A DNA stretch of 64,000 nucleotides from Auanema rhodensis (lineage: Eukaryota; Animalia; Nematoda). The stretch spans positions 13,764,001-13,828,000 of the forward strand of contig OZ059894.1 of NCBI GenBank assembly GCA_964057225.1. The letters run 5' to 3'. How positions within the stretch are numbered: position 1 is the stretch's first letter; each line of letters begins with the position of its first letter. The notes beneath the pieces were generated by a model. The model had not been told where the DNA came from. It made no database searches and saw nothing but the letters and a program-made list of their open reading frames with translations. Of this stretch, positions 3,512-41,192 are shown piece by piece. Both the position numbers and the translations under genes were made by a program.

Positions 3512-4033
3512 TTAACGGTAAGATTTCTGGTAGCGAGCACGGGCACCTGGACCTCCGAACTTCTTGGACTCACGGCGGCGAGGATCAGAGACGAGGAGAG
3601 ACTTGTCGTAGATAGCAAACTGCTCCTTGAGTTCTCTCTTGCTCTGCTCATCAACGTACTTGTGATAGTAAGCAACCTGAACGTAGACAAATAGAAAACT
3701 AAAAATTCAAAACCGCATACCAGAGCTCTGGCGATAGCCTGGCGAATAGCGTAGACTTGGGCGACATGTCCTCCACCATTTACTCTGACTCTGATGTCAA
3801 CATCTTGGAAGCGGTCCTTTCCAACAACGAGGAGAGGCTCCTATAAATTTTGTTAAGGAATTAATAAATATATACAAGAATACCTGAAGCTTCAAACGGA
3901 GGATCTGGGGCTCTAAGTGCTCCAATGGACGTCCGTTGACCTTGATGAGACCACGTCCTTGCTTGCAATGAGCAACAGCGGTAGCAGTCTTCTTACGTCC
4001 GTAAGTCTGCACAGACTTAAGCTTATCAGCCAT
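3512..4033 (-). CDS. rps-16: 40S ribosomal protein S16 (uS9)
   Basis: Exons 4033-3884, 3840-3721 and 3676-3512. Translation [24 protein letters not shown]...[13 protein letters not shown]. Unpaired TTTTAG acceptor 6 nt before the ATG; AATAAA at about 3492-3497. Confidence 0.98.
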
Positions 4034-4222: not shown

Positions 4223-5399
4223 TTATTGTTTCTTTCCCTTGGGCCTGTACTCAGCAACAACAATAGCGTGGTCACGCTCATATGGTTCTAGTGTGACTTG
4301 CTCTCTGGGTTTGAACTTTTCTTCCTTTAACTTATTAACTTCTCCAGTAAAAACAGCAGCTGGTTCAGCAGTACTGTCAATACAGTTAGCCTTGATAGAA
4401 ATAACGGCATGTCCACCGTTTTTCAGGAAGTTATGAGCGTTAAGGGCAACAATTCTAGCTTGATCTGGCTGGGCAACATCGGAGAAGATAGTATCGACCA
4501 TTCCAACGAGCATTCTGTATTTGTGGGGGTGACGAGCATCCTCAACAATTGGAACGATGTTAGTACGTTTCTTAGCAACATTAAGAAGATCTCTTCCAGA
4601 ACGGTGGGAGAATTCAACAGCGTATACAATACCTTCCTGCAAAATAAAATATTGCCAAAGAAAAAGAAATTTCACTAACAGGGCCAACGAGATCAGAGCA
4701 ATGAGATACAGTTGTTCCAGAAGCAGCTCCCAAATAAAGAAGCTTAGTTCCGGGTCCAATATGAATATTTTCTAATCCTCCCATCATACCAGCAGCTAAC
4801 TTAGATCTGAAGGGATTCCACACACGGTATTCTACAGAGGTACCAGTAGCATCTTCTACAGAAACACGCTTCTCTCCATATACAGACTCTCCTACAACCA
4901 TATTCTTGGTGGCAAGAGCATCTTCCTTTCCCTTAGCAATGAAGACACCTAAATATCTTAATTAAAAAAGAATGGAAAAATAATACTTACCGTCGTATCT
5001 GTGAGGCTCAACAATAACACTCTTTCCACCTCTCATTCCACCACCACGGCCTCCTCTTGGAGCTCCACGACCACGGGGTCCACCGCGTGGGGATCCACGT
5101 CCACCACGAGGAGATCCTCTGAAAATATATAACTATAAAAGTACCAAGATATAATCATACCTGCCACCGAAACCTCCACCAAAACCTCCGCGATCTCCAC
5201 CGCCACGACCACCTCTGAATCCTCCTCTATCTCCAAATCCTCCTCTGTCTCCGAAACCTCCGCGTCCACCTCTGAATCCTCCACGGTCACCGCCACCGCG
5301 TCCACCGCGGAAACCTAAAGTATCATTCGATAACTAAAAAAATTAAAAAAAAAAGCACTAACCTCCGCCACCACGAGGAGAGAATTCGGGTCTTCCCAT
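4223..5399 (-). CDS. fib-1: Fibrillarin (box C/D snoRNP 2'-O-methyltransferase)
   Basis: Exons 5399-5363, 5314-5161, 5118-4991, 4948-4680 and 4636-4223. MGRPEF start, RGG/GAR domain, [33 protein letters not shown] and LEPYERDH motifs. Confidence 0.98.
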
Positions 5400-6079: not shown

Positions 6080-8179
6080 ATGATCAAACTAGAAGACATA
6101 GGTCTCATTAGTCTCGTTTTATCCATTTACTAGTTAATTTAGGGTACTATGATTTTTCGTTTACTCAAGGACTCAGCCCTTCACAACTTACAACTCCAAA
6201 ATACAAGAATGTAAGGTGTCTCAACTAAATTTAAGTCATTCTATGTTTTAGTTTGACAAGCTTTTGCCTTTAACGGATAGTTCTTTCTCAAAATGTAATT
6301 AATTTCATTTTAATTAGTTAATGAACTATTTTCAAGTTAATTTTAATGCTGGATACACTACTGAAGATGTGGATGTGTTTAATGACACGATTGAATTCGA
6401 AGCTTCTGCGAAAAGCGGACTCGACAATGTGGACATGAATCTTCTCTTTAGAGACTTATATCCTAGGTCTTTAGGAAAAAACATGTTATCTAATTTAGAA
6501 GAAGCAAAAATTCAATCTTTAAATTATCTACAGGAATATATGTTTACGTTATGTTGCCTAGGTATGTCATTCTGAAATTTAAAAAGTTTGAAAAAGAAAT
6601 TTAGATCAACCATTTGTTTTGTATGGTGATATGAAATCGGGGAGACAAACCGGTTATTTGTTACCTTTACTAGAGAAACTTTCTCAAGCCAAAGAGGGTA
6701 GACCAACGGTAAAACTACTTCAATTGATTCAGAAGTAAATTATGGAATTGCAGAAATGGGAAGGTCCCTCTATGCTGATTGTAACATTCACTGAACAAAG
6801 GGCGAGGCATATATCGCTTGTCTTAGAAAAATTAATTAAAGGTTTAGTTTTGGTTATTTTATAATTATACAAAAGAGATTGAAGGGCTGCGAGTCAAATC
6901 TGTTTCCATGCTTCACGAATGTGATTTTTCTTTAGTTGGCGCTGATGTATATATAAGCAGAATAAGCCATCTTACCGATTTTATCAAAAAGAATGAAGTA
7001 GGTACAACATACGATTGTTATATTACTCTATGACTTTAGGTTGATCTTAGTGTAACTGATTACCTAATTATTGAAGAATGCAATAAAGCTTCAAATCCCG
7101 ATTATGCACAAAAGCTGAATAAACTTCATCATATTTTTTCGCGTTGCTCAGGCATTGTGAATTCTAACTGGTTATTTTTATTTTTAAACTGTGTTCTTGC
7201 AGCCATATCAAACATATTTAATATACGAAAAGTATACTAAAATGGAGCCTGTGCTTGAGGGATTTCATAGTGATCGTCACTCAATTTTAAAATTTCATAA
7301 GTCTTTGAAAACGTCTTCATTCCATGTGCATGTAGTGATGTTTTACGAAGTGATATTTTTTTGGTAATTTTCATCGAATTCTGATAGTTTAGAAAAGCAA
7401 ATGGTTAAACTATCGAAAAATGCGAGCTTTGCAAAAGCAATTAATAAGTTCTGATGCCATGGAATTCGGTAAGACAAATGCTATTTATTCAATATAAAGA
7501 ATTATTCAATAGAAACGAAAGAAAATAGATGGCTTATATTTACGTCATCAGCCTCTTCTGTTAATTATCTTTGTGGGTATTTAAGTAACCGTCTAAGAGC
7601 ACCACCAATTCCTTTGACTATGTTGGAACAACTTATTCTATTAGTTTATACATTATACTATACAGGGCGACAGATCAAATAGGAATAGAGAATGCAACTG
7701 GCAATTTCCGCGAAAGACATAATGTTATGATAGCAGAGTATGCCATGATTGATAAGATTCCTGAATCTGGATATATAGGAAATGTATGTGTTTGAGTTTT
7801 TATAGTTAAAATGTTCATTAATTACAGATTATATGTTTTGACTTGCCAGAGACACATCTATTTTTCCAGTATTTGACCAAGATGAAAATATTAGCCCGTA
7901 ATGTTAAAGGAAATCTTTGTATCTTTTTTAACCCTTTAATTGATGTGAATAAAACGCCTGAAATTTGTAAAGTAAGTGTTTCCTGTAAATCCAATTCCTA
8001 ATGCAATTTTTAAGTTTCTACGCAAGTGTAAAGAACCGTTAAGTAAAGATCTCCATGATTTGGTTGAATGGCATCGACAGATGATGACTAAAGAAAGGAT
8101 CCGTGGAAGCTATCCGTTAGTTTGGGCAAAGCTCAAACATACGGAAAGCCTTCCAAAGTTTTATCATAGTGATTTATAA
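6080..8179 (+). CDS. Degenerate DEAD-box-fold protein (predicted pseudo-helicase), Vasa/GLH-related
   Basis: 13 exons splice via short GT-AG introns into one open frame (MIKLEDIG...FYHSDL*). The motif order of a DEAD-box core is retained but degenerate: Q region LNYLQ, motif I GDMKSGRQTGYLLP, motif II IIEECNK, motif IV WLIFT, and CFDLP followed by no HRIGR. Confidence 0.75.
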
Positions 8180-8373
8180 CGTAATTGCTTTTTTACCATA
8201 AGCTAAAGCATCACATTGTTTTTAATAGTTGTATATTTATTTTATATTCATAATGTTATTATTTGTTTTACTAAAACACTAATTTAAAAAATCTTAATTA
8301 ATTCTTATTAAAGCGTTGTGCTTCGTATACTTTAAAGTCTCTCATATTTTGTTTTTATTTGAAAACATCTTAG

Positions 8374-10728
8374 ATGCTTTCAACTGGCATATATAAGCCT
8401 GAACTGAAAACAAATGGAAATGAAAGGCGACGTAGAAGATTCGGTAGGATTATCGAAACTTCTCATTACCAAACCGATTGATTATTGTAGTGGATCTGAA
8501 TATCGAAACCGATGAACTTAAGCATACGACAGGTGAAAATTTAACAGAACATTGGGAATATCATTTGACCAATATGAAATATTTTGGTCCTGCTAAATGT
8601 GCTAATATAGAGCCTATTAGGTATTTTCTAATTCGTAAATTTATATTTCTATAATAATAGTGGGTTCCATGATTGTGGCTTGGATGAGCAATTGATAAAA
8701 AATGCCCAATCCATATTTCAAGAACTATCCCCTCTTCAGAGATATACGATTCCTATAATTTTGTCGAATACTGGTTCGTATCTCTTTGTTTCTCTAATAA
8801 GTCTTATTCTAGGCCATGTATTGGTTAAAGCACAAACTGGGTCTGGTAAAACAGCCTCCTTTGCTCTTCCGGCTATTCAAACTGTTATTAACGCTCATAG
8901 AAATGAAGGGTATGGACTTTCAAAATATTAACTAAAGCTAACATATTTAACAGGAAGAATGATTCACCTTTGGTAATTATTTTAACAAATACTTGTAACT
9001 TGGCTCTGCAAACGTTTAAACATTGTTCCAAATTCGCTGGGTTTAATCAAGCAACTCATGGCATGTGTAAGCATGGTTATCACTTTATTATTTAATGTTT
9101 TAGAAAGTAATGTTCAATGCTCCGTATCCGTTCTAACTAGTGGGGCTGCAGCCAAGTAAGCCTCAAAGGCGTATTGAATAACATATTTCGAATTTAAGGA
9201 TGGCAGGACAGAAAACAATAACCAGTGATATAGTTATAGCAACAATGGGAAGTCTTTTAAAAGAATTATCAGAACAACGAGTTCGTATCTTCATAGAGTC
9301 ATATTTTCATATATATGCATATTCAGCTGTCTTTAAATAAATTGAAGTTGCTTATATTAGACGAAGCAGATAAGATGATGGAAAATTCTGCTTTTGGTCA
9401 GGATGTAATTACCATGTACGAATCATATATACCAGAAATGACCCAAGTTTGTTATCATGTTTTTTTAAATTGTAAAATTGAAACTTAGAAAAATTTACTT
9501 GTTGGAATGTTCTCTGCAACGTATGAAAATGATAATGGGCAAATGATTTTTAATAATGTGATGGACATCGTTTTTAGGTTTTGTTGAGTGTTTCTTTGAT
9601 TTTTATTTTTAATTATTATAGAAAGGAAACAGACATTAATATTGTGATGGTCCCAAGCATGAAAGGATTTATTGACCAGAGAATCATTCAAGTTAGAATT
9701 TCTCTTTCTGATTCCCTTGAAATTACACGATTAAGATTAAAATGAGTGATCGTATGACGTTTGTCAACTCGACCATTCGTCGTATGAACTGTTGTATATT
9801 ACAAAAGAAATTGAGTTGGCTTACTGCTCTACTTGATGCCGATCTAAGAGAACAGAATACTAGTAAACAAGGTGATATAAGTTGTTCATTTCAAATTTAT
9901 TGAAATTTACTTTCAGGGCCTTATGAAAAACTAACTTTCATATTTGTCGGAAAGAAGATGATGTGTAACTATTTGGCTAGCTACTTATCTGTGAAAGGTT
10001 ATAATTTTTGTCCATATAATAGGTTTGAATAGTAGGATTTTCCCACTTTTTAATTATTAATTTTAGCGATTTTGATCTCACCTATACAAATGAAGTTGAT
10101 AAAAAAATTCGAAATAAATCAGTTCACGGAATTGTTGCTACCAACAAAGTTGCTAGGGGAGCTGACCTGCCTTTTGTTGCTCACGTATGTTGAACCATGT
10201 TCTACTTTCTTTTATTTCCATTTTAGGTTATTATTTTTGATATGGATCCTGATTTTTCTGTTTATGAGCACAGGTTTGTTTGTAACTTTGTTTTTAAAAA
10301 ATAGAAATATTTAAATTAGAATTGGACGTACAGGCAGAGCTGGTCACAAAGGAACATCTACTATACTTTTTGATACTACACAAGATTTTAAGTTGACACC
10401 TCAGATATATGAAGTTGGATTAGTTTTTAAAAATTGATATAATTATTTATCACTATTAGTTTTTTCTTGAACATGGTCAAATGATTCCAAGCTGGCTCCA
10501 ATGCAGTGCATTTGAAACATTAAGACAAGCTAAAAGGTATGCTAATCTTTGATGATGTTGTATTAATATTTATTTGTTTTCAGCTTTTATCAAACCGACT
10601 TGTAAGTTACTTTATTCACTTAATAAATAATAACTTTGATACATTGACTTTGTAGCGGAGATGATACTGAACTTCAAGATGACGATGACGATGATGATTA
10701 TGGTGTATGCGAATATATACAAGAATAA
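8374..10728 (+). CDS. DEAD-box RNA helicase, Vasa/GLH/DDX3-related (divergent)
   Basis: Multi-exon ORF with SPLQ (Q), AQTGSGKT (I), LDEADKM (II), FSAT (III), FIFV (IV), ARGAD (V) and HRIGRTGRAG (VI). It ends QMIPSWLQ followed by an acidic tail DDTELQDDDDDDY. Includes an 18-nt microexon at 10584-10601. Confidence 0.9.
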
Positions 10729-30149: not shown

Positions 30150-32660
30150 CACAATCGAAAATCCAGTGTAAGGTTCTATAAAAGAAATTTTAATATGAAC
30201 TTAATGTAAAGCGCAATTTGTTTCCATTTGAAGGAGTGCATTAGAAACAGCACCTCTCACACTTTTCTTGTCACGGCAGTACGCAAAATGGACTACATAC
30301 GGTACACATTAATGTCTTTTTTGAAGATTTTACGTGCATAACCCAAAACTTTTTGTTTTTTTTTAATGACATCATTTTCCGCGATTATTATTTGTATTCG
30401 GTGAACTGGTCTCTACTTATTCGGTCTACAACTAACACTATTTTAAAATTTTACTTTTCAATTAAAATGAATCGAGTGATATAAGTTGTCAGCGTTTATT
30501 ATAAGAACGTTAAAGTAAATATGATAACTTTTATGAAACTGTTTATTAGGTATAATTTTACAATCATACGAATGTCTTGATACACAGACTTTAACAGTAA
30601 TCGATTTAAAAAAATGGTAAAACTTCTACTTACGTCTTACCACTCAAGCAATATATACGAGACGTTGAGTTTTTTGTTAGTTCAAATGTGCTGAGTAATT
30701 TTCTGAAGATTTAATCGTGTGCAGTCTTTCTTCCTTAATTCATATATCGTAACTGCCAATATTTCAGTATTAATACTTAGGAATCTTCTAGTTTATCCTT
30801 TCAAATTGATATGTATCGATTTGTGCTAATAATGTTCTAACTATCCTATGTAGTTCGCTTTTTGGAAAACGCAAGGTTACATATCGTTTCGTCTATGTTA
30901 TATCTCATAATAAGAAAAGTATATGGACTGCTGGTTTGCATCTTCTATTCCTTGAACAGATAGACAGGCGAAACATACGGAATTACGTGTATAATATTAT
31001 TACATTACATATTTTAAAAGCTATAGCTTTTTATTATTTAAAATAAACATTTTTCCTCAGAAAGAAAGCTTTAAATATATGTTCTCTTCCCGAAAAATTT
31101 TGTAATAATACAATAACTATCATACAATTCTATATCAGCTGGTATTATAAAATACAAAGTGCAGACCTTTCCTCAGTCTCTTGTATCCTCTTTAAATTTC
31201 ATTAAAATATATCATCTTTAATATGTCAATAACACTTATATATCAGTCTACTCTAGTCATAATACTTTTCTCATTAGATACATATGTTTGTAATGTATTT
31301 TGGATTATAACAAGAGAAAATGCATTATCATATCAAGAAAGTTCACAATTTATCATTTTTATGCATTTTTTTTATTAAAACAAACAAAACCATTTCTTTT
31401 TTGCCAATTGTAAATTCCTAAGAATAAAAGACTGTATAAGATTTATTGGGGAAGAAATCATTAATTTGTTCCTTTTTTGTAATTAAACTCTTATTCTTCA
31501 TATAATACAGTTAAAATAAAAAACATCGATTTAAAGCTTTTATTTCATTTGGTTTCCATTAGAGCGGAAACCAGGAGGATCCGACTAAAATTTGTCAATC
31601 CAGTTATTGGATTGTTGAAAACTACAGCTTTATACACAAACCAAATATAGAGATAATAGAAGAAATATCAGGCTAATATAACTAAAATAGACTATAACAA
31701 TGCTTATTATGATAAGAGTGAGAATTGAACATAAAATATGCTTTGACTATGTACAGGTTTTATGATGATGGTGCCCAGCACACAATCAAGTAGTGAGAAA
31801 TAAGGAAAAAAGCTCAATAATCCATATAATTTAGTATGCTGAGACATGCCAAGAGTTCGACAAAAGAGAAAAAAAACATACAAAATAGATATGAAGATAT
31901 GAGGCAACTCTTCAATATCATTCCATTGCAAGCATAGGCGTTGATTTTGATTGCGACTGAAACACCGATGAAACTTACATGCTATCTCTTGAGAAGAGAA
32001 GAATGTTTAAAAAATGTTGGGGAAATGCTTAGAAAAACTAAATACACAACCGATCATGAGAGAAACAATCTGGGATTGAGATAACACACGTATTTTGAGA
32101 GTATAAAGGGTAAAAGAAGGTAAATAGGAGATAGTTTCAGTATGAATAAGCCCGAAAAGTTTAGTTAAGTGGTAAACTCAGGAATAGGCCCGGTCGACTA
32201 ATCTCAGCTAATGATTTTAGTTTAGTTAGGAAATAAATTTCTTTGGGGGGAATGTGTCAACACAGTAGACAATACTGTTTTCTGAATTTGTATCTTTCAC
32301 TCATGAATCTCAAAATTTCAAAATTTTAGTTTTTTCTATGCATTAGAAGATTCTAGAAATGCTTTGTAAATGGCATACCTAAAGTGGAAGGTCGATTAAA
32401 AAGCATTGAGAGAAAAGAAGTTTGAAAATCAGAAAAACAAATGCTCGCATAAAGAATTTTGATTAGAGTATTAAGATGTTGATTAAAACCTTTTGAAAAT
32501 GAATATCATAAAGGTGGTATACTCGTAGTCATTGAATCAGCTCGTACATATTAACTGCTTAAGTTGTGGGAGATAATTTAAGAGAAAAAAAATGATATTA
32601 TGTGCATTGGGAGATATTTTGAGTAAACACAATTAAAAAAGAAGGGTAAAATAGACGTAT

Positions 32661-32667
<7 letters not shown>

Positions 32668-32718
<51 letters not shown>
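32668..32718 (+). repeat. (GA)n microsatellite
   Basis: About 25 perfect GA units, just downstream of the crm-1 stop codon. Confidence 0.95.
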
Positions 32719-32722
<4 letters not shown>

Positions 32723-32885
32723 AGGAAAAAAAGACTGAGAGAAGTTTGCAATAGAACAAAGCTTTCGGCAAAGCATGACCATAATGACACATATCGAAGA
32801 GTTGAGAAAAATTTAATTTTTCTCAACTGGGAGAAAAATTAGAAAACGTTGATTTTAATTTGAATTTAAGAGATACGTTGTATAT

Positions 32886-35800
32886 CTAAACATTAAAATC
32901 ATGATGCTTAGACTTTGAAGATGCTCCATTGGCCCTTGTAGTTAAGGGGATAGTGTCTGGCTGAGGACCAATTCCAGATGATAGCGATGAAACTGCAGTT
33001 GATGTATCGGAACTGTAATCGAAAATTATAAGTGAAGTTAAGCGTCTATTAATATCTTACGCAGTAGACAGGAGGCTTTCTGACTGCCCATCTGAATGGG
33101 AATCATGTCGTGTTTTGCCCGACCAATCATCCAAATGAGGAGATGATCCAATATGTTTCGTTGCTGATAATCGAACCGATGAATCCTTGATTAAATGAGG
33201 CTATAAAAGATTTAGATGCTGAATTATTAGATACAACATCTGATCGTTACCTTGCTATTAAAGCGGCTTCTCTTGTAGAGAATCAACAGCAGAACCAGTA
33301 AGCCCAAAACAGAAAGAAAGGCTAAAAGTGTTAAACCAACAAAAGAAAGGCTAATGATACTATGAGGATGATTTATAGATCCACTATTTCCTTCACTTAA
33401 CAATAAAGGTTCAACATCTATAAATTTCATTATAAAATAGTTAAAAGATATGTATAACCTTTACAAAGAGGACAACATTGGCCATCTATCGGAACTGGAT
33501 CAGCGCAAGGTGGACAAACGGTTTCTTTGCAAATAGTTTGTCCTCTAGCAACACAAGAACATTTGAGACAGTCACCATCCTTAAATATATCAGTCAATAA
33601 CTTTAACATATAGAAGTCTAGTTTACCCTCCATTCTTCGTTTACAGAATAAACAGATGATTTATATGTACAGACATCCGCAGAAGATAAAGCATCTATGA
33701 AAAATCATTACAGTTTAATTTAAAAAGTGAAATTTACCTGAGCAAATGGGACAACATCTTCCTTTTATAACCAATGGTGTTCCTTTACAAATTGTTACAT
33801 TGTCACATGATTCGCGAAAGCAGACAACATGACCATTCTTCAAACAAGTACAAGATGTACAATCATCAGTACGCCAATCTGATGCTAAAAAGTTTTATCT
33901 TCGTTTATTAGAATATGTAAGCGAGCTTCACCGTATTTATGAACTGCTCCATTTTCGTCAGTACAAACAGTTGATACATCAGATTTCGCAAGCACCGTGG
34001 AGTTTTCAGATTGACATCTTAAATGAAAAAGTTTAAAAAATTTTAATAGTACTTTTTATACCTTGGGCAACACTGATCGTTTGGTAAGAGAACTGGACTT
34101 TTACAAGCTATAGGTGGACATTCTAAAGTATGACACAACACATGACCAACTCTGCAAGTGCAAGATATGCATGGAGCAAGCTGCCACGTTTCGCCATCTG
34201 TATAAAACATTTTACTCAATTTTTGGAATGTTAACTCCAACCTGTAAAGAGACGTCCAGTTCCTGGAGATTGGCATACAGTATGTTCATGCTTATTCAAT
34301 GGAGCAGGAGTGAGTTGAGATGTGGTACATGTTGGGCAACAATCATCTTCAAAACAATTGAGATAGCATATATTGAACAGAATAAATTAAAGCAAAATAC
34401 CTTCTTTCTGAATCCAGTTCTCATCAGCACACTCAGCTGGTTTTGGCGGACACGATATTAAAGAACAATATTCCTTAAAAAAATGAATGAAAATACTAAT
34501 TTAAAATAATTATATAAATACCTGTTTCTGCTCACAGAAACAATGTCTACAACCATCATTCCACCATTCACCACCATCACGCTCAATAACCTAATATATA
34601 TGTATATACATAGATATTGTTAAAATATTTATAAATATAAAAAAGTATTGTTTACCTTTCCATTACGCGTCATCGAAATGCATTTATCCCATCCTGTCAG
34701 CTTTCCAATTTTATCGGTGATTGTTAGCTTTGCTTCAATTCGAGACATAGCTTAAGCAATATATTTACACATTAGCTAACTATTTTTTATTATTACCTCG
34801 ACATTTACAAACGGGGCATCCGACAGAATTAGCTTCGAAACCGTATAAGCAATGTTTGAAGCATTGATGTAGTGGAGGGCATTTAGCACATCGGCATACC
34901 CCACAACCAACTGAATCTTTAAGGTATCCATGAGCACATTGTCTTAAACAATTAAAATTTGTATTATAATTTTAATTAGAAGAATATATATTTAAGAAAA
35001 GGCTAAATATCTTACTTATCACATGTTTCTTTGCTGAGTTCTGGACAATCATTTCGTTTTGGATGTTCTGCTGGTAAACATCGACATTCGAAACATCCTC
35101 TTAAAATATAAAAATATTAGTTTCAAACAAAAACAAATTTTGATATTGTACCTGTCATCTCTTTGTAATCCATTTTCACATCGTAGAGGGCAATGATCCA
35201 ATGATGGACATGTAGCAGGTAAGGTAAGTACAGTAGGTTCTTAAATATATTAATTTCAAATTTATACATTATATATTATTCAATTACCATCACAAACAGG
35301 ACAACATTGTCCTTCAATTTTACGTGGATTTTCACAACTAACTGTACACATAAATTTTTCACAAATTGCTGTACCTTCTTCCGAGCAAGTGCATCTAGAC
35401 ATAAGTAAAATTATTAAAATATAATTGCAATTAACATTTTTTAACAACCATTCTTCACGTATATTGTTTCAAAATAAAGGATTCACGTAAGAATATACGT
35501 TACGTGTAATTGTTATAAGCTAATTATTTACTCACGTGGTACAATCGTCCTTTTGCCAAGTTTCATTTTTCTTCATTTTTTCCAATTTTTCAGTTTGACA
35601 TCCAACACATACAGGACAGCATTCGTCTTCCGGAATCATAACCCATGTGCAGTCAACTAAACATATTCAATTTCAAAATATAAATAAAGTATTTCTTTTC
35701 ATTCAAAATGACAATTATTTACCTGGTGTTTTTGGACAGGTCATCTTTCTACATACAGCAACACCTTTCTTACATTTGCATCTATCACATGCATTTGACA

Positions 35801-38513
35801 TCCATTCTTGACCATCAGAATAGACTTTTCCATCCCGCTCACACGATTTTCCCTACAATATTTTAGAATTATATCCTTGAATTTGCTCTTTAAATGTTTA
35901 TACAGATATATGAAAGATTTATGTACATATTAAAAGTTTTTTTTAATATTCTAAACGATCACAGATTCGCTTTTTCTGTATTTTCCCAGAGACTTCATTG
36001 ATACAGCGAGTAACCGTCTATTCAAACACCATTCTTTGCACAAAAAGGACTTTCTTGATCAAAAATCATAAAAAAGGCGAAAAGATAAATCTAGCTACTT
36101 GAAAAGGTCACTTGCTTGCTTCAAATTACATATATTAACGCTTTGAAGTCCAAATACTTACTAGTGCTTTGACGTCATCGTCACATTCCCACTCATCACA
36201 ACACCTTCCAGGATTTCCATTTCCTTTTCGAATAATTTTTAATTTTTTGCCTTCTGGACAAACGGCTGGTCGACATTCAGATGCTCGACAACGACATCTA
36301 AACAAATTTAAATCAGGTTTATACGTGATATTCTCACAGGAAAATATATATCTTACCCAGGGCGAACCGGACAACATCCGCCTAGTGGAACATGCTCAGC
36401 TGGTCTGATACTGTCAGCTGGGCAGTCAACTCCTTCATTCTCGTCCAGTGGCAATGGGGGGCAGTGAACAGACGCACATTCTGATTCTGAAACAAAAAAA
36501 TTTTTATACATTAGTATAATATTAACTCACGTCTCTCCCTACACTCAAAAACATCACAACATCTTCCTGGTTCTGCTCGTCCATCTTCTACAAGCACTCG
36601 CTTCTTTCCATCTTCACAAGTGGGCACAAGTGATTCGCATTTCTAAAGACAAGCACACTTTTGTTTCTCTCAAATTAAATTTTTACGAGAATAAATGGAC
36701 AGAAAGCCCAAGTTTCTCTCTTGATATGGACAATCTCACCTGTTGATCACAGTGGCAAGTACCTGGCTGACCACAACATTCTCCTGAAGGAGGAGGTAGA
36801 ATAACCAATCGTGAATCAAATGGACAATTAGGATGGAAAACAACAGAACAATTAGCTTTTAAGCATTTAGATGATGGATCTAAAAGGGCAATTAAAAAAA
36901 ATGATATCTATGAATATGAAAAGATAAGTTTTAGTAGGATAATAGAGTTCAGATGATCTCCTATTCATATCATATTCAAACATTTTTACATTTTAATCTT
37001 ACAGTAAATAAGTAAGATTTTAGCTATGCATCATATAATATGCATACGAATATTTAAATCCCTAAAAGAAGTTATTTTTATCCGATAAATATATACTACA
37101 ACAACGTTTTTTTTAATTTTTTTTGAAGTGTTTCAACCTTTTCATAACACAGTTCTCTGTTTTTTTTAAACGAAACAAAATAAATGAATAGAGTACGATT
37201 TTTCCCGTCAATTGTTAACTAAGTGCTTCCCCACAATCATATCTAACATGTTGAAAAGAGAGTTTTGTGACTTGGCAAGTAAGTCTTCGCCCCCTTTTGC
37301 TCTCACACAAAGTCTATTTGCTCGAAGCTCTGTCGTTTGTTTCACAGTCAACCTGCCTTGCATGTCGTGCTCTTTTCCCCTTCATTCTATCCTCATTTCA
37401 TCTCACTCATTGCTCTCTTCTTTTCCCCTGTTTTTCGGTTATCGCTTTACCCAAACAAAGCTAGAATAATTCGCAATCTTTGATTCTCACCTACTTACAC
37501 ATACCTTATAAGGCAAAAGAAAAAACATAAAAGAATCAAATACACGAGATTCATACAACAAAATACTTATCCTATTATTAATATTCAAACATTTCTACAA
37601 ACATTTCATCTGAAGGTCATTTTTCTCAACGAAGAGTATCGGAAAACTTTTATTTGCAAAGTACCGCATGAGGAGCTAAGAAATTATTCTCAAACAGAAG
37701 CTAAATTACTAATTTTCCTATGAGAAATTAATTTGATCACTCATAACGTTTTTATGTTGAGTTGGAAAACTAAACTTTATGCTCAGAGAGTTGTGCCAGC
37801 TAAAGCATGACTGATCAAAGTAAACACAGACAGTAAGAAAAGTGAAAGCAGATCCTGCTTTCAAGTACACTGCACACATGGGAATGTAATCGTAAAAAAA
37901 GAAAAAATGATGGAAATCCTTGCTTAAAAATTCAGCATATGCTCCAGCTTAAATATAAAGCATAAATGGTTACATAAGTACTTTTATCCAAAATATATTT
38001 AAGTAATAAAAATTAATTTCAGGTTTAAAAAACAATTATCAAGCTTGATGGGTGAAAAACTATAGATAATTTGTGTTATTGTATGCCATAAATGACAGAA
38101 AAATTACTTACAATTAATAGAAAACATATAATTTTTATAGAAAATTACATGTGTCCCTAAAAATTTTTAGGTGATGAAGGGCCAGGAAAGGTACAATATG
38201 TAATTGTATACTACTTCATCGTAATTATAATGGCCTCTCTAGTTAAATACTAAAGAAATTGCCCTTATACATGTGCACTAAACTAGAAAACAAACTACGT
38301 TTTTGCTGTAAAATTGTTAAAAACAAATATATTTTCTTATATTATATGTACTGTTGTCAATTAAGTTAAATCATGAACATTATCAAACCGATATGGATAC
38401 ATAGATACTTAGATAGGTTGAACTCTATGAGAGACAAAATCAGAGTAAAAAAGAATACAGAGAGAAATGAATATAAAGAGAGAGGGAAAGAGAGAGAGAA
38501 AGAAAGGGAGAGA

Positions 38514-38545
<32 letters not shown>

Positions 38546-41192
38546 TATTCGGCAAATATTTTCTGCTTTATTGGTCAATTTTGGATGACCATTATTCTAG
38601 ACAGCTATTCTATTTCATGTAACTAAGTTGTAGAACATACGAGAAAAACAATTTGAGTTTTGAGAGGAATCACAAATGTAGTTGTAATAGTAAATTCAAT
38701 TAGTAGTAAACAGAATTAGTTAGATATGTGTATATTAGGTTATGTGTACATAAATGAAAAGATTTAAAGCTTTTCAATTAGATATTCAATGAAAAAAGAT
38801 ATAGCATTCAAGTTTTTCATAAATATTTCTATTGTATTAAATTGAACAAAAACTGAACAAACTATATGTATAATTAGGAAGAATAACATTTGTTTTTTTT
38901 AAATTTTAATTGACTTATATTATACTATTATAAGTTAACTACTAATTTGCACGAGATGTTACATTTTATGAGTTTAAAGATCTTTTTTTTTGAGTATGTA
39001 CAACTCTAAGCTATTAAAGCATTCATTTCACAAAAAATATCTTGGGAATTATTGAAATATGAGTCAGGATAAGCATATAATTCTCAAATTGAATTAACGT
39101 TTCACCAAAAATTGTCTTTTTATGTACCGCCTGATCCAGAATGTATTCAAAACTATCCCCATAAAAACTCTTGGGATAACCTATTCTGCCAATAAATATT
39201 GAAACCAAACACGAGATAGCCTTCTGGAGCAATTTGACACGCCATCTATAGGCTAGCAAAGGCTTAAATTTCTAGTCCCAGACAATAGAAATAGAAAAAT
39301 GAAAAACGCTTTGAAAACTGTCTATTATTTTAACTCGAAATGATGTGAAAAATTAAAAAATGGAAATTAATAAACATACCGACACATACGCCATATTCAT
39401 CATTATCATTCAGTTGTTGGCATATGAGGTTTGCAGAGCAAACGCCAGCAGATGATCCACATTTTTCTCCTACTGACCTAACACATACCTGTAAAAAATA
39501 ATTTTTATAATATAATATTAGTTTTTTTTTTTGTAATTTTGTGTAAATTTTCTATAAGAATTAATTCAGCTTTAGATTTATCCGTTTTAATCATTTGTTT
39601 AAATTCGATTTTTTTTTATTTTCGATGTTTGCTCCATCTAACGGCTTCCATGTCATTTGCAGAACACTTGTTTAAATTTTCAAAATGCGACATCAGGTGA
39701 TGTCTGAAAATGAAGTTTTTCCCAATGTGGACTATCCGACGGGTTCAATTCATGCAGCTCTTCAAGGAAAGGAAAAGCGAAGCCGGCTGAACGGTTCTTG
39801 AGTGGTTGATCTGCTCCGTCGGATTTCATCGATCTCTCCCCGTCTCTCTCTATGTCAATCTCTCCCTTTTTAAACCTTTTTAGACATCTTTGTTTCATTT
39901 TTCTGTTTTTCTAATACAAATAAAATGGATAGAAACATTACAAAATAATAAAATATATAATATACTTACGTGTTACGTGAGATTTAACGTGTGTTACAGT
40001 TGTTCACGTCACGTAAATATTATTAAATGAATAGAGTTACCATGCTGATCATGCAGAACGGTTATTTTGCCTTGAATTTCTCACATTATCTATACCATTC
40101 TCACAGTTTTTCTATAATTCATTCAATTCTTCTTAGAAGTTATTCTAACCCCTTGCTAGACACTGTTTTACTTCTCGTCTTCATCAGCTTCTTGTACCCC
40201 AATACAAATTGCTGCGATCGTCGTCATTGTCTACAGTGAGTTTGACGATGAGACGCACATACACTCTCTTCGGGAAGCACAAGGATCAAGTTCGAGCGGA
40301 GAAACAGAGAGAGAGTATAGAACAGATTGCAAAAAAAGTTCGAAAAGAGCAAGACAAGAATAGAGAGAGGGGGAATAGGGCATAGAGGAGAAGCAGCTCT
40401 TCCTGCAACTGCTCTTTCTCCTCATTCTCGTTCTTGTCGTCCTTCTCTTACATCAACCTCACTAGCCATACACCTATGTCTCTTCTGTATTTCGATAAAG
40501 GGATTAAGACGAAAGCTGCTCCTCGAGAAGCAAGACACTATTTGACTGGAGAAGTTGAAGACAAAAGTTTTTTTCGAAAAGGACAAGGAAATGATAAAAC
40601 TAACTTTAATCTAGTTATGCTCTCAAAAAAATCAAGAATTTATACTTATTCTGTCCAATTATCCATAAACATTCCAGTTTTTAGTTTTCGTCTTAGTTGC
40701 GAAGTGAGTACAGAATACGCTATTTCGAATCTTTTCGGAAATTCCGAACTCGAAGTAAAAATTCACAGTAAATAGAACGAAATGGCTGATTCTTTCAAAG
40801 AAATAGTAGAAAAGCTCAAAAAACTGCTTTTGTATATAGTAAAGAATCCAATGTTATACTAATAAATGATTTATACGTATGTATGAGAATACACCTACCG
40901 GACAACATTTACACTGATCCAAGACCGTCAATTCACATTCGGGCTCTGGACATTCTGGACACGGGCTCGGACATACTACTTGATGTCTCAGATGATCTAA
41001 TGCGTATGGCAGAACATCTTTTTTTACTTGAGATGAAGACAGAATGAGATCATGCGATACTTCGAATGAAGAATCTGCTTCTGCTGAAGTCAGTGACGAC
41101 GTCAGAAGTTCAGATGCAACGAAGCCAGATGGCAAAATGTACAGGCTGACGACTGCCAGGTACAGCAGTAGCCAGCTTGGACGGCTGGACAT
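32886..41192 (-). CDS. crm-1: CRIM1-like cysteine-rich transmembrane BMP regulator (IGFBP-like, VWC and antistasin repeats)
   Basis: Signal peptide MSSRPSWLLLYLAVVSLYIL. IGFBP-like CKCCPVC. Several VWC repeats (e.g. DGETWQLAPCISCTC...CCPRC). Antistasin-like repeats (C..G...D..GC..C.C). TM segment IISLSFVGLTLLAFLSVLGLLVLLLIL. Cytoplasmic tail ending HDFNV*. Confidence 0.93.
38477..38545 (+). repeat. Imperfect (GA)n purine tract
   Basis: GA/GGA/GAAA repeat in crm-1 intron 2. Confidence 0.9.

Follow-up and report, generated by a model that had tools for sequence, protein, structure and literature searches.

A pair of adjacent genes related to DEAD-box helicases was analyzed in a 64,000-nucleotide (nt) stretch of the genome of the nematode Auanema rhodensis (GenBank assembly GCA_964057225.1, contig OZ059894.1), hereafter called the window (C1:13,764,001-13,828,000 of the 181-Mb assembly; 32% G+C, introns of ~44 nt). 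In the reading that we favor on balance, the upstream gene (gene 1, window positions 6080..8179, + strand) encodes a scaffold protein built on a dead DEAD-box fold, probably MUT-15, and the downstream gene (gene 2, 8374..10728, + strand) is its live tandem sister. What the data show are the gene models, the loss of catalytic motifs in one gene and their retention in the other, a conserved counterpart of gene 1 in a second species, the helicase fold of that counterpart and the introns shared by both genes; orthology to MUT-15, the scaffold role and co-transcription are inferred.

Both genes were rebuilt by enumerating GT-AG introns that keep the reading frame, and gene 1 was then corrected against its orthologue P0002, described below. 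Queries for database searches, family scans and folding were single exons or the protein P0002; the joined spliced models served only to build pairwise and three-way alignments and to compare them with fetched loci. Gene 1 comprises 14 exons (6080-6101, 6143-6210, 6252-6294, 6337-6561, 6605-6708, 6754-6841, 6885-6997, 7040-7156, 7203-7349, 7393-7468, 7513-7621, 7666-7783, 7828-7971, and 8015-8179) and 512 codons, from an ATG at 6080 to a TAA at 8177-8179. Its 13 introns are all GT-AG and 41-46 nt long, the spliced frame is free of stops and matches P0002 exon by exon, and the 5′ exons from 6080 on are backed by the N-terminus of that protein. Gene 2 runs from an ATG at 8374 to a stop at 10726-10728 in 18 exons (8374-8443, 8491-8620, 8661-8773, 8813-8909, 8954-9064, 9108-9155, 9199-9280, 9327-9446, 9489-9577, 9622-9691, 9736-9871, 9917-10022, 10067-10184, 10227-10273, 10320-10413, 10460-10536, 10584-10601, and 10656-10728), giving 532 codons with introns of 39-54 nt. 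Following this re-reading of the sequence, the coordinates, the strand and the motif reading of both genes in a preliminary description of the locus were all upheld; its count of 13 exons for gene 1 was corrected to 14. Intron 3 of gene 2 (8774-8812), with a length of 39 nt, is in frame and stop-free; its retention would leave the frame unbroken and place 13 extra residues between the Q motif and motif I.

The catalytic motifs set the two genes apart. At the position of motif I (P-loop), gene 1 reads GDMKSGRQ instead of AxTGSGKT (6625..6648, + strand), with SEMKSGRK in P0002, and at motif II it reads EECN instead of DEAD (7073..7084, + strand), identically in P0002; both were read directly from the sequence. 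The corresponding motifs of gene 2, AQTGSGKT (8830..8853, + strand) and DEAD (9360..9371, + strand), were read directly and also recognized by the Pfam DEAD model, which scored 30.6 bits on the piece carrying the Q motif and motif I (cut-off 26) and 22.2 bits on the exon carrying DEAD. Motif III is SAT in gene 2 (9513..9521, + strand, read directly) and YQT or YEK, depending on the alignment, in gene 1. Motif V is ARGAD in gene 2 and IDKIP in gene 1, and motif VI is HRIGRTGR in gene 2 (10269..10338, + strand, split as HR and IGRTGR by the intron at 10274-10319) and LTKMKILARN in gene 1. The Q motif of gene 2 consists of an aromatic residue followed by SPLQ (F..SPLQ); in gene 1 the glutamine is still aligned and the rest is degenerate. 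Motif Ia is an atypical TNTCNLA in gene 2 and FTEQRA in gene 1, and for motif Ib gene 2 has an equally atypical TMGSL, with no entry for gene 1. Single-exon scans of gene 2 did not detect Helicase_C.

Taken together, gene 1 retains none of motifs I, II, III and VI of an active DEAD-box ATPase, and the same holds for P0002, whereas gene 2 retains all of these as well as the Q motif. This agrees with what had been described beforehand, namely a gene 1 that lacks GKT, DEAD, SAT and HRxGRxGR and a gene 2 that is a catalytically intact helicase. The best explanation of these motifs is that the gene 1 protein would no longer be able to bind or hydrolyze ATP and that gene 2 would encode an ATP-competent, very diverged DEAD-box helicase.

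Gene 1 is conserved in a second species. A phmmer search with its 80-residue exon against 1.84 billion representative proteins returned a single full-length relative, P0002, an unnamed protein of 510 amino acids (aa) from Auanema sp. JU1783; a word search with the same exon gave no candidate. Short local phmmer matches to a repeat protein (P0001) and to a protein of 2175 aa (P0003) were set aside as chance similarity. The gene 1 protein and P0002 align over 504 positions almost without gaps, at 51% identity, and could be matched exon by exon. The two exons carrying the former P-loop and motif Ia stand out with 71% and 79% identity, against 40% to 60% in the others; exons 5-6 together reach 75%, versus ~48% elsewhere. 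P0002 keeps the degenerate motifs SEMKSGRK and EECN within a counterpart of nearly the same length.

These data bear on the view that gene 1 might be a pseudogene, decaying or not transcribed, with an open frame that survived by chance. The loss of every catalytic motif and the exon-level Pfam scans without match are what such a decay would leave behind. Against it stand the 512 codons that are open across 13 correctly phased GT-AG introns, the JU1783 counterpart with almost no gaps and the uneven conservation, which is unlike neutral decay. Because of these three features neutral decay can be set aside, and we consider the pseudogene explanation hardly credible. Judged by its sequence, gene 1 is a real conserved gene; the preliminary description had reported a maintained, uninterrupted frame.

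Descent of gene 1 from a DEAD-box helicase is supported by searches and structure comparison with P0002; Pfam scans of the single exons of gene 1 gave nothing useful. With P0002 as query, the Pfam DEAD model scored 16.7 bits (E = 0.006), below its cut-off of 26. The best sequence matches in the PDB were DEAD-box proteins and covered the first RecA domain (RecA1) only, namely DDX53 (E = 3.8e-4) and the planarian Vasa-like protein DjVLGB (E = 0.005), followed by DDX21, Prp5, DDX23 and, lower down, Vasa. In the ESM Atlas, 29 of the 30 clusters nearest to P0002 by features carried DEAD plus Helicase_C (score 0.96). The stored Atlas model of P0002 (predicted template modeling score, pTM, 0.53) matched DEAD-box clusters, including DDX4 and DDX43, with a template modeling (TM) score of 0.63 over ~400 residues. 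A tandem RecA1-RecA2 fold, one of the checks proposed earlier for gene 1, was thereby found on its orthologue. These matches support the origin of gene 1 from a DEAD-box helicase, with the catalytic motifs since lost.

Whether genes 1 and 2 are paralogues was assessed by similarity and by intron positions. The two proteins are 20-22% identical and collinear over 402 residues, with a pairwise BLAST E value of 2e-4. Over 460 aligned codons, five of the 13 introns of gene 1 and the 17 introns of gene 2 lie in the same alignment column and phase, at gene 1/gene 2 residues 221/217 (phase 0), 335/356 (phase 1), 371/391 (phase 2), 410/430 (phase 0) and 458/477 (phase 0). The expected number of chance coincidences is 0.16 (P ~8e-7), and five were not reached in any of 200,000 permutations. 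Four more intron pairs lie within a few residues of each other. As a control, the sites were followed in 29 other DEAD-box loci of the genome by a strict count, in which tblastn matches containing stop codons were not taken as read-through. Clean read-through, and with it lack of the intron, was seen in 12 loci at gene 2 site 430, in eight at site 217, in two at site 391 and in one at site 477.

Since five exact intron positions are shared, we conclude that genes 1 and 2 are likely products of an old tandem duplication of one intron-bearing ancestor, a case that is weak by sequence similarity. A hidden Markov model of the gene 1 family reached no more than noise level on the exons of other DEAD-box loci and of gene 2. 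Gene 2 does not emerge by similarity as the nearest relative of gene 1, and the argument for paralogy therefore draws on introns and adjacency. The dead/active paralogue pair proposed in the preliminary description is in this way borne out by the introns. With an identity of only 22%, the duplication looks far older than the genus. In a separate observation, the intron within motif VI of gene 2 has no counterpart in gene 1, and three other DEAD-box loci (L006, L013, and L023) are also broken in or beside HRxGR; the site may be an old intron position.

Gene 2 had been called Vasa-like, a label that found no support. Its best matches within the genome are the DDX3-like loci L019 (130 summed bits) and L005 (122), followed by PRP28-like (110), Gemin3-like (108) and GLH-like (103) loci, so that the lead of the DDX3-like loci is slight; no close paralogue was found in the genome. 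The top PDB match changes with the exon queried: the piece with the Q motif and motif I hits CshA and DBP10, the one with motif II DBP5 and DDX20, the one with motif V SrmB, and the one with motif VI Vasa (E = 0.05). In the N-terminal 100 residues that were read, zinc knuckles and FG or RGG repeats are absent. Gene 2 thus has neither the N-terminal repeats nor the consistent Vasa/DDX4 similarity of a Vasa/GLH protein. It resembles the Vasa/GLH and DDX3 (VBH-1, LAF-1) proteins in its nearest relatives in the genome, L019 and L005, with GLH-like fifth, and in an acidic C-terminal tail, and the Atlas model of the gene 1 orthologue likewise resembles DDX4 and DDX43. Unlike these proteins, gene 2 lacks the knuckles and repeats and has atypical motifs Ia and Ib, and it is not orthologous to the true GLH and DDX3 genes, whose loci are elsewhere in the genome. 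At best, gene 2 can be placed loosely in the DDX3/DDX4 clade. Three DEAD-box loci (L023, L024, and L028) lie within ~70 kb on contig C3 (G000:C3:9183400-9258200); at least one of them (L023) looks GLH/Vasa-like, and the three may form a GLH cluster.

Another candidate relationship for gene 2 is with MUT-14 (UniProt Q17978) and SMUT-1 (Q9UAX9) of Caenorhabditis elegans, active DEAD-box helicases of Mutator foci that are described as a DEAD-box family separate from the GLHs and share their pathway with MUT-15. Like them, gene 2 encodes a small DEAD-box protein without long repeat tails and with intact catalytic motifs; MUT-14 and SMUT-1 measure ~500 aa. They differ from gene 2 in their location, as the C. 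elegans genes are not known to adjoin mut-15. That gene 2 might be a MUT-14-type helicase is offered as a hypothesis only.

For gene 1, the closest described parallel is C. elegans MUT-15 (RDE-5), recently reported as a DEAD-box pseudohelicase scaffold of RNA interference with tandem RecA domains (Busetto et al., bioRxiv, September 2026, doi 10.64898/2026.09.04.749402). In that protein the Q motif is absent and NNAE replaces DEAD; ATPase activity is lacking, and RNA is bound with a dissociation constant (Kd) of 0.26 μM (doi 10.64898/2026.09.04.749402). MUT-15 is the hub of CPUG, the complex for cleavage and poly(UG)ylation, where its partners are NYN-1, MUT-2 and the eLOTUS domain of MUT-16; MUT-14 is not mentioned (doi 10.64898/2026.09.04.749402). 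The preliminary description had stated that no such pair was known; for the pseudohelicase half, this has been overtaken by the 2026 report on MUT-15. Judged against the published description, gene 1 and P0002 have an architecture of the MUT-15 type, that is, a DEAD-box-like tandem RecA helicase fold with degenerate ATP motifs. The proteins are also of similar size (the MUT-15 construct comprises residues 52-541, gene 1 encodes 512 aa), and both are nematode-restricted and fast-evolving.

A further probable likeness is the neighborhood. In the window, gene 1 lies head-to-head with the gene for fibrillarin, fib-1 (4223..5399, - strand; an RGG-rich N-terminus and a methyltransferase open reading frame), with 680 nt between the fib-1 ATG (5399-5397) and that of gene 1. 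The 5′ part of rps-16 (3797..4033, - strand) follows downstream, 189 nt from the stop of fib-1; the rps-16 ATG is preceded at 7 nt by a TTTTAG acceptor. In UniProt, C. elegans MUT-15 (Q22061), fibrillarin (Q22053) and rps-16 (T01C3.6; Q22054) fall in one accession block. Consecutive accessions of that era derive from one cosmid. C. elegans mut-15 is T01C3.8 and fib-1 is T01C3.7; together with the accession block, these names suggest that mut-15 lies near fib-1 and rps-16 in C. elegans as well.

On account of the same rare kind of protein, the similar size and the seemingly shared neighborhood, gene 1 is a probable orthologue of C. elegans MUT-15/RDE-5. By analogy, we infer that its likeliest role would be that of a MUT-15-type scaffold rather than that of a regulator of gene 2. 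Two features distinguish the genes in addition to motif II, which is treated below: gene 1 still has a glutamine opposite the one in the Q motif of gene 2, whereas the Q motif of MUT-15 is reported as absent, and no tandem active paralogue has been reported for C. elegans mut-15. A parallel for the pair itself is offered by RDE-8 and NYN-1, an active-inactive pair from the C. elegans complex of MUT-15. There too, one catalytic and one dead paralogue share a fold and the dead one is kept as a structural partner; that pair, however, has a Regnase-type NYN nuclease fold, and a physical interaction of the gene 1 protein with the gene 2 protein would be conjecture.

The spacer between the two genes (8180..8373, + strand) is 194 nt long and ends in a TTAG that abuts the gene 2 ATG, just as had been described. 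It contains no AATAAA, with an ATTAAA at 8307-8312. The TACTTT at 8328, put forward earlier as a Ur-like element, is present but carries no information as a signal: TAYYTT occurs three times in the spacer (8238, 8328, and 8345) and 493 times in the window on both strands, which corresponds to ~0.75 expected per 194 nt and was judged to be chance level. By its layout (same strand, short spacer, acceptor at the downstream gene) the pair resembles an operon of the spliced leader 2 (SL2) type. The spacing is also close to that of fib-1 and rps-16, which lie 189 nt apart in this window and have the same order in C. elegans, where they form an operon.

Genes 1 and 2 may be transcribed together, as far as their arrangement suggests. 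The alternative that they are independently transcribed neighbors, with a promoter of gene 2 in or near the spacer and spliced leader 1 (SL1) trans-splicing of its transcript, has a chance only slightly below even. It is favored by the missing canonical AATAAA and by the chance-level UAYYUU match, and compact nematode genomes often have short spacers between genes on the same strand. On the other hand, 194 nt would have to accommodate the 3′ untranslated region of gene 1 plus any promoter, the spacing is like that of fib-1 and rps-16 in this window, which form an operon in C. elegans, and the acceptor TTAG directly abuts the start codon.

Several points weigh against the favored reading as a whole. 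The direct adjacency of mut-15 and fib-1 in C. elegans is an assumption from gene names and the accession block. A word search with P0002 and a search with the two-species profile A2 returned P0002 alone and no MUT-15; this profile is the clean five-exon alignment of gene 1 and P0002, which was used, while the all-exon MAFFT alignments A1 and A3 were scrambled and not used. The same profile scores gene 2 at 9.5 bits versus 22.5 bits for human DDX53. An AlphaFold2 model of P0002 based on A2 reached a predicted local distance difference test (pLDDT) score of 36 and was not used, which leaves the Atlas model (pTM 0.53) as the evidence for the fold. In the DDX3-like locus L005 an intron lies only two residues away from the shared 217 site, and the intron at this site could predate the pair. 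Motif II of gene 1 is EECN, as opposed to NNAE in C. elegans, and the Ur-like motif in the spacer is at chance level. A search of unnamed Atlas clusters also gave no MUT-15-like cluster, but this result was uninformative.

A rival view is that the pair is an invention of the Auanema lineage. In this scenario, a fast-evolving DEAD-box gene was duplicated in tandem and one copy lost catalysis and took on a new role, unrelated to MUT-15, with the position beside fib-1 being coincidental. The single relative found belongs to the same genus, no sequence link to any Caenorhabditis protein is detectable, and the difference in motif II points in the same direction. Yet DEAD-box pseudohelicases are rare and the C. 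elegans one has its accession in the fib-1/rps-16 block, and the 22% identity between genes 1 and 2 makes their duplication look far older than a genus. Moreover, MUT-15 is reported to be poorly conserved (one comparison that was found covers Caenorhabditis species only), so that sequence searches would be expected to miss it. We therefore regard the lineage-specific origin as rather unlikely, and retain a MUT-15-type scaffold next to its live sister as the preferred interpretation.

Searches of the surroundings added little to the picture. The genome search showed no second copy of the locus or of any gene 1 exon, and the idea of a homoeologous copy, or of some other paralogue of the locus at another place in the genome, was rejected. 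Scanning the window for Rfam families and tRNAs gave no match, and a scan for promoters and terminators of the bacterial type was uninformative. A run of cysteine-rich exons of the von Willebrand C/CRIM type (e.g. CPPC...CCPLC) at window positions 33200-36900 on the - strand suggests a crm-1-like gene. Long (CT)n/(GA)n dinucleotide tracts occur at ~32600-32840 and 38370-38600 and appear as SLSLSL in the list of open reading frames.

The history that we propose would begin with an intron-bearing ancestral DEAD-box gene that was duplicated in tandem long ago. One copy, gene 2, would have stayed ATP-competent while diverging strongly; the other, gene 1, would have lost its ATP motifs and been kept by selection, its protein most likely working as a scaffold that binds RNA and proteins. 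In a bolder version, the locus would preserve the birth state of MUT-15. An active Mutator-type helicase, possibly of the MUT-14/SMUT-1 lineage, would have been duplicated in tandem beside fib-1, and one copy would have lost its ATPase activity and turned into a scaffold for the poly(UG) machinery. The live copy and the dead one would still be adjacent in Auanema, co-transcribed as an operon and acting in the same complex, as a second active-inactive pair besides RDE-8/NYN-1. We consider this version improbable and put it forward as speculation.

New here are a pseudohelicase, most likely of the MUT-15 kind, outside Caenorhabditis and its tandem, intron-sharing partner with intact catalytic motifs, which suggests how the pseudohelicase arose. 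Not until 2026 was MUT-15 itself recognized to be a pseudohelicase. Should gene 1 be its orthologue, the range of the scaffold and, by implication, of the machinery for poly(UG) amplification would reach another rhabditid genus, and the constrained surfaces of the protein would become visible, with the region of the former P-loop and motif Ia conserved best. A plausible origin would then be at hand in the active helicase that is still adjacent and has introns in common, and both the origin of MUT-15 and any relation to MUT-14 would become testable by means of trees and intron positions. In the opposite case, with gene 1 not being the orthologue, it would represent a second, independent DEAD-box pseudohelicase of nematodes, which would be the more surprising outcome.

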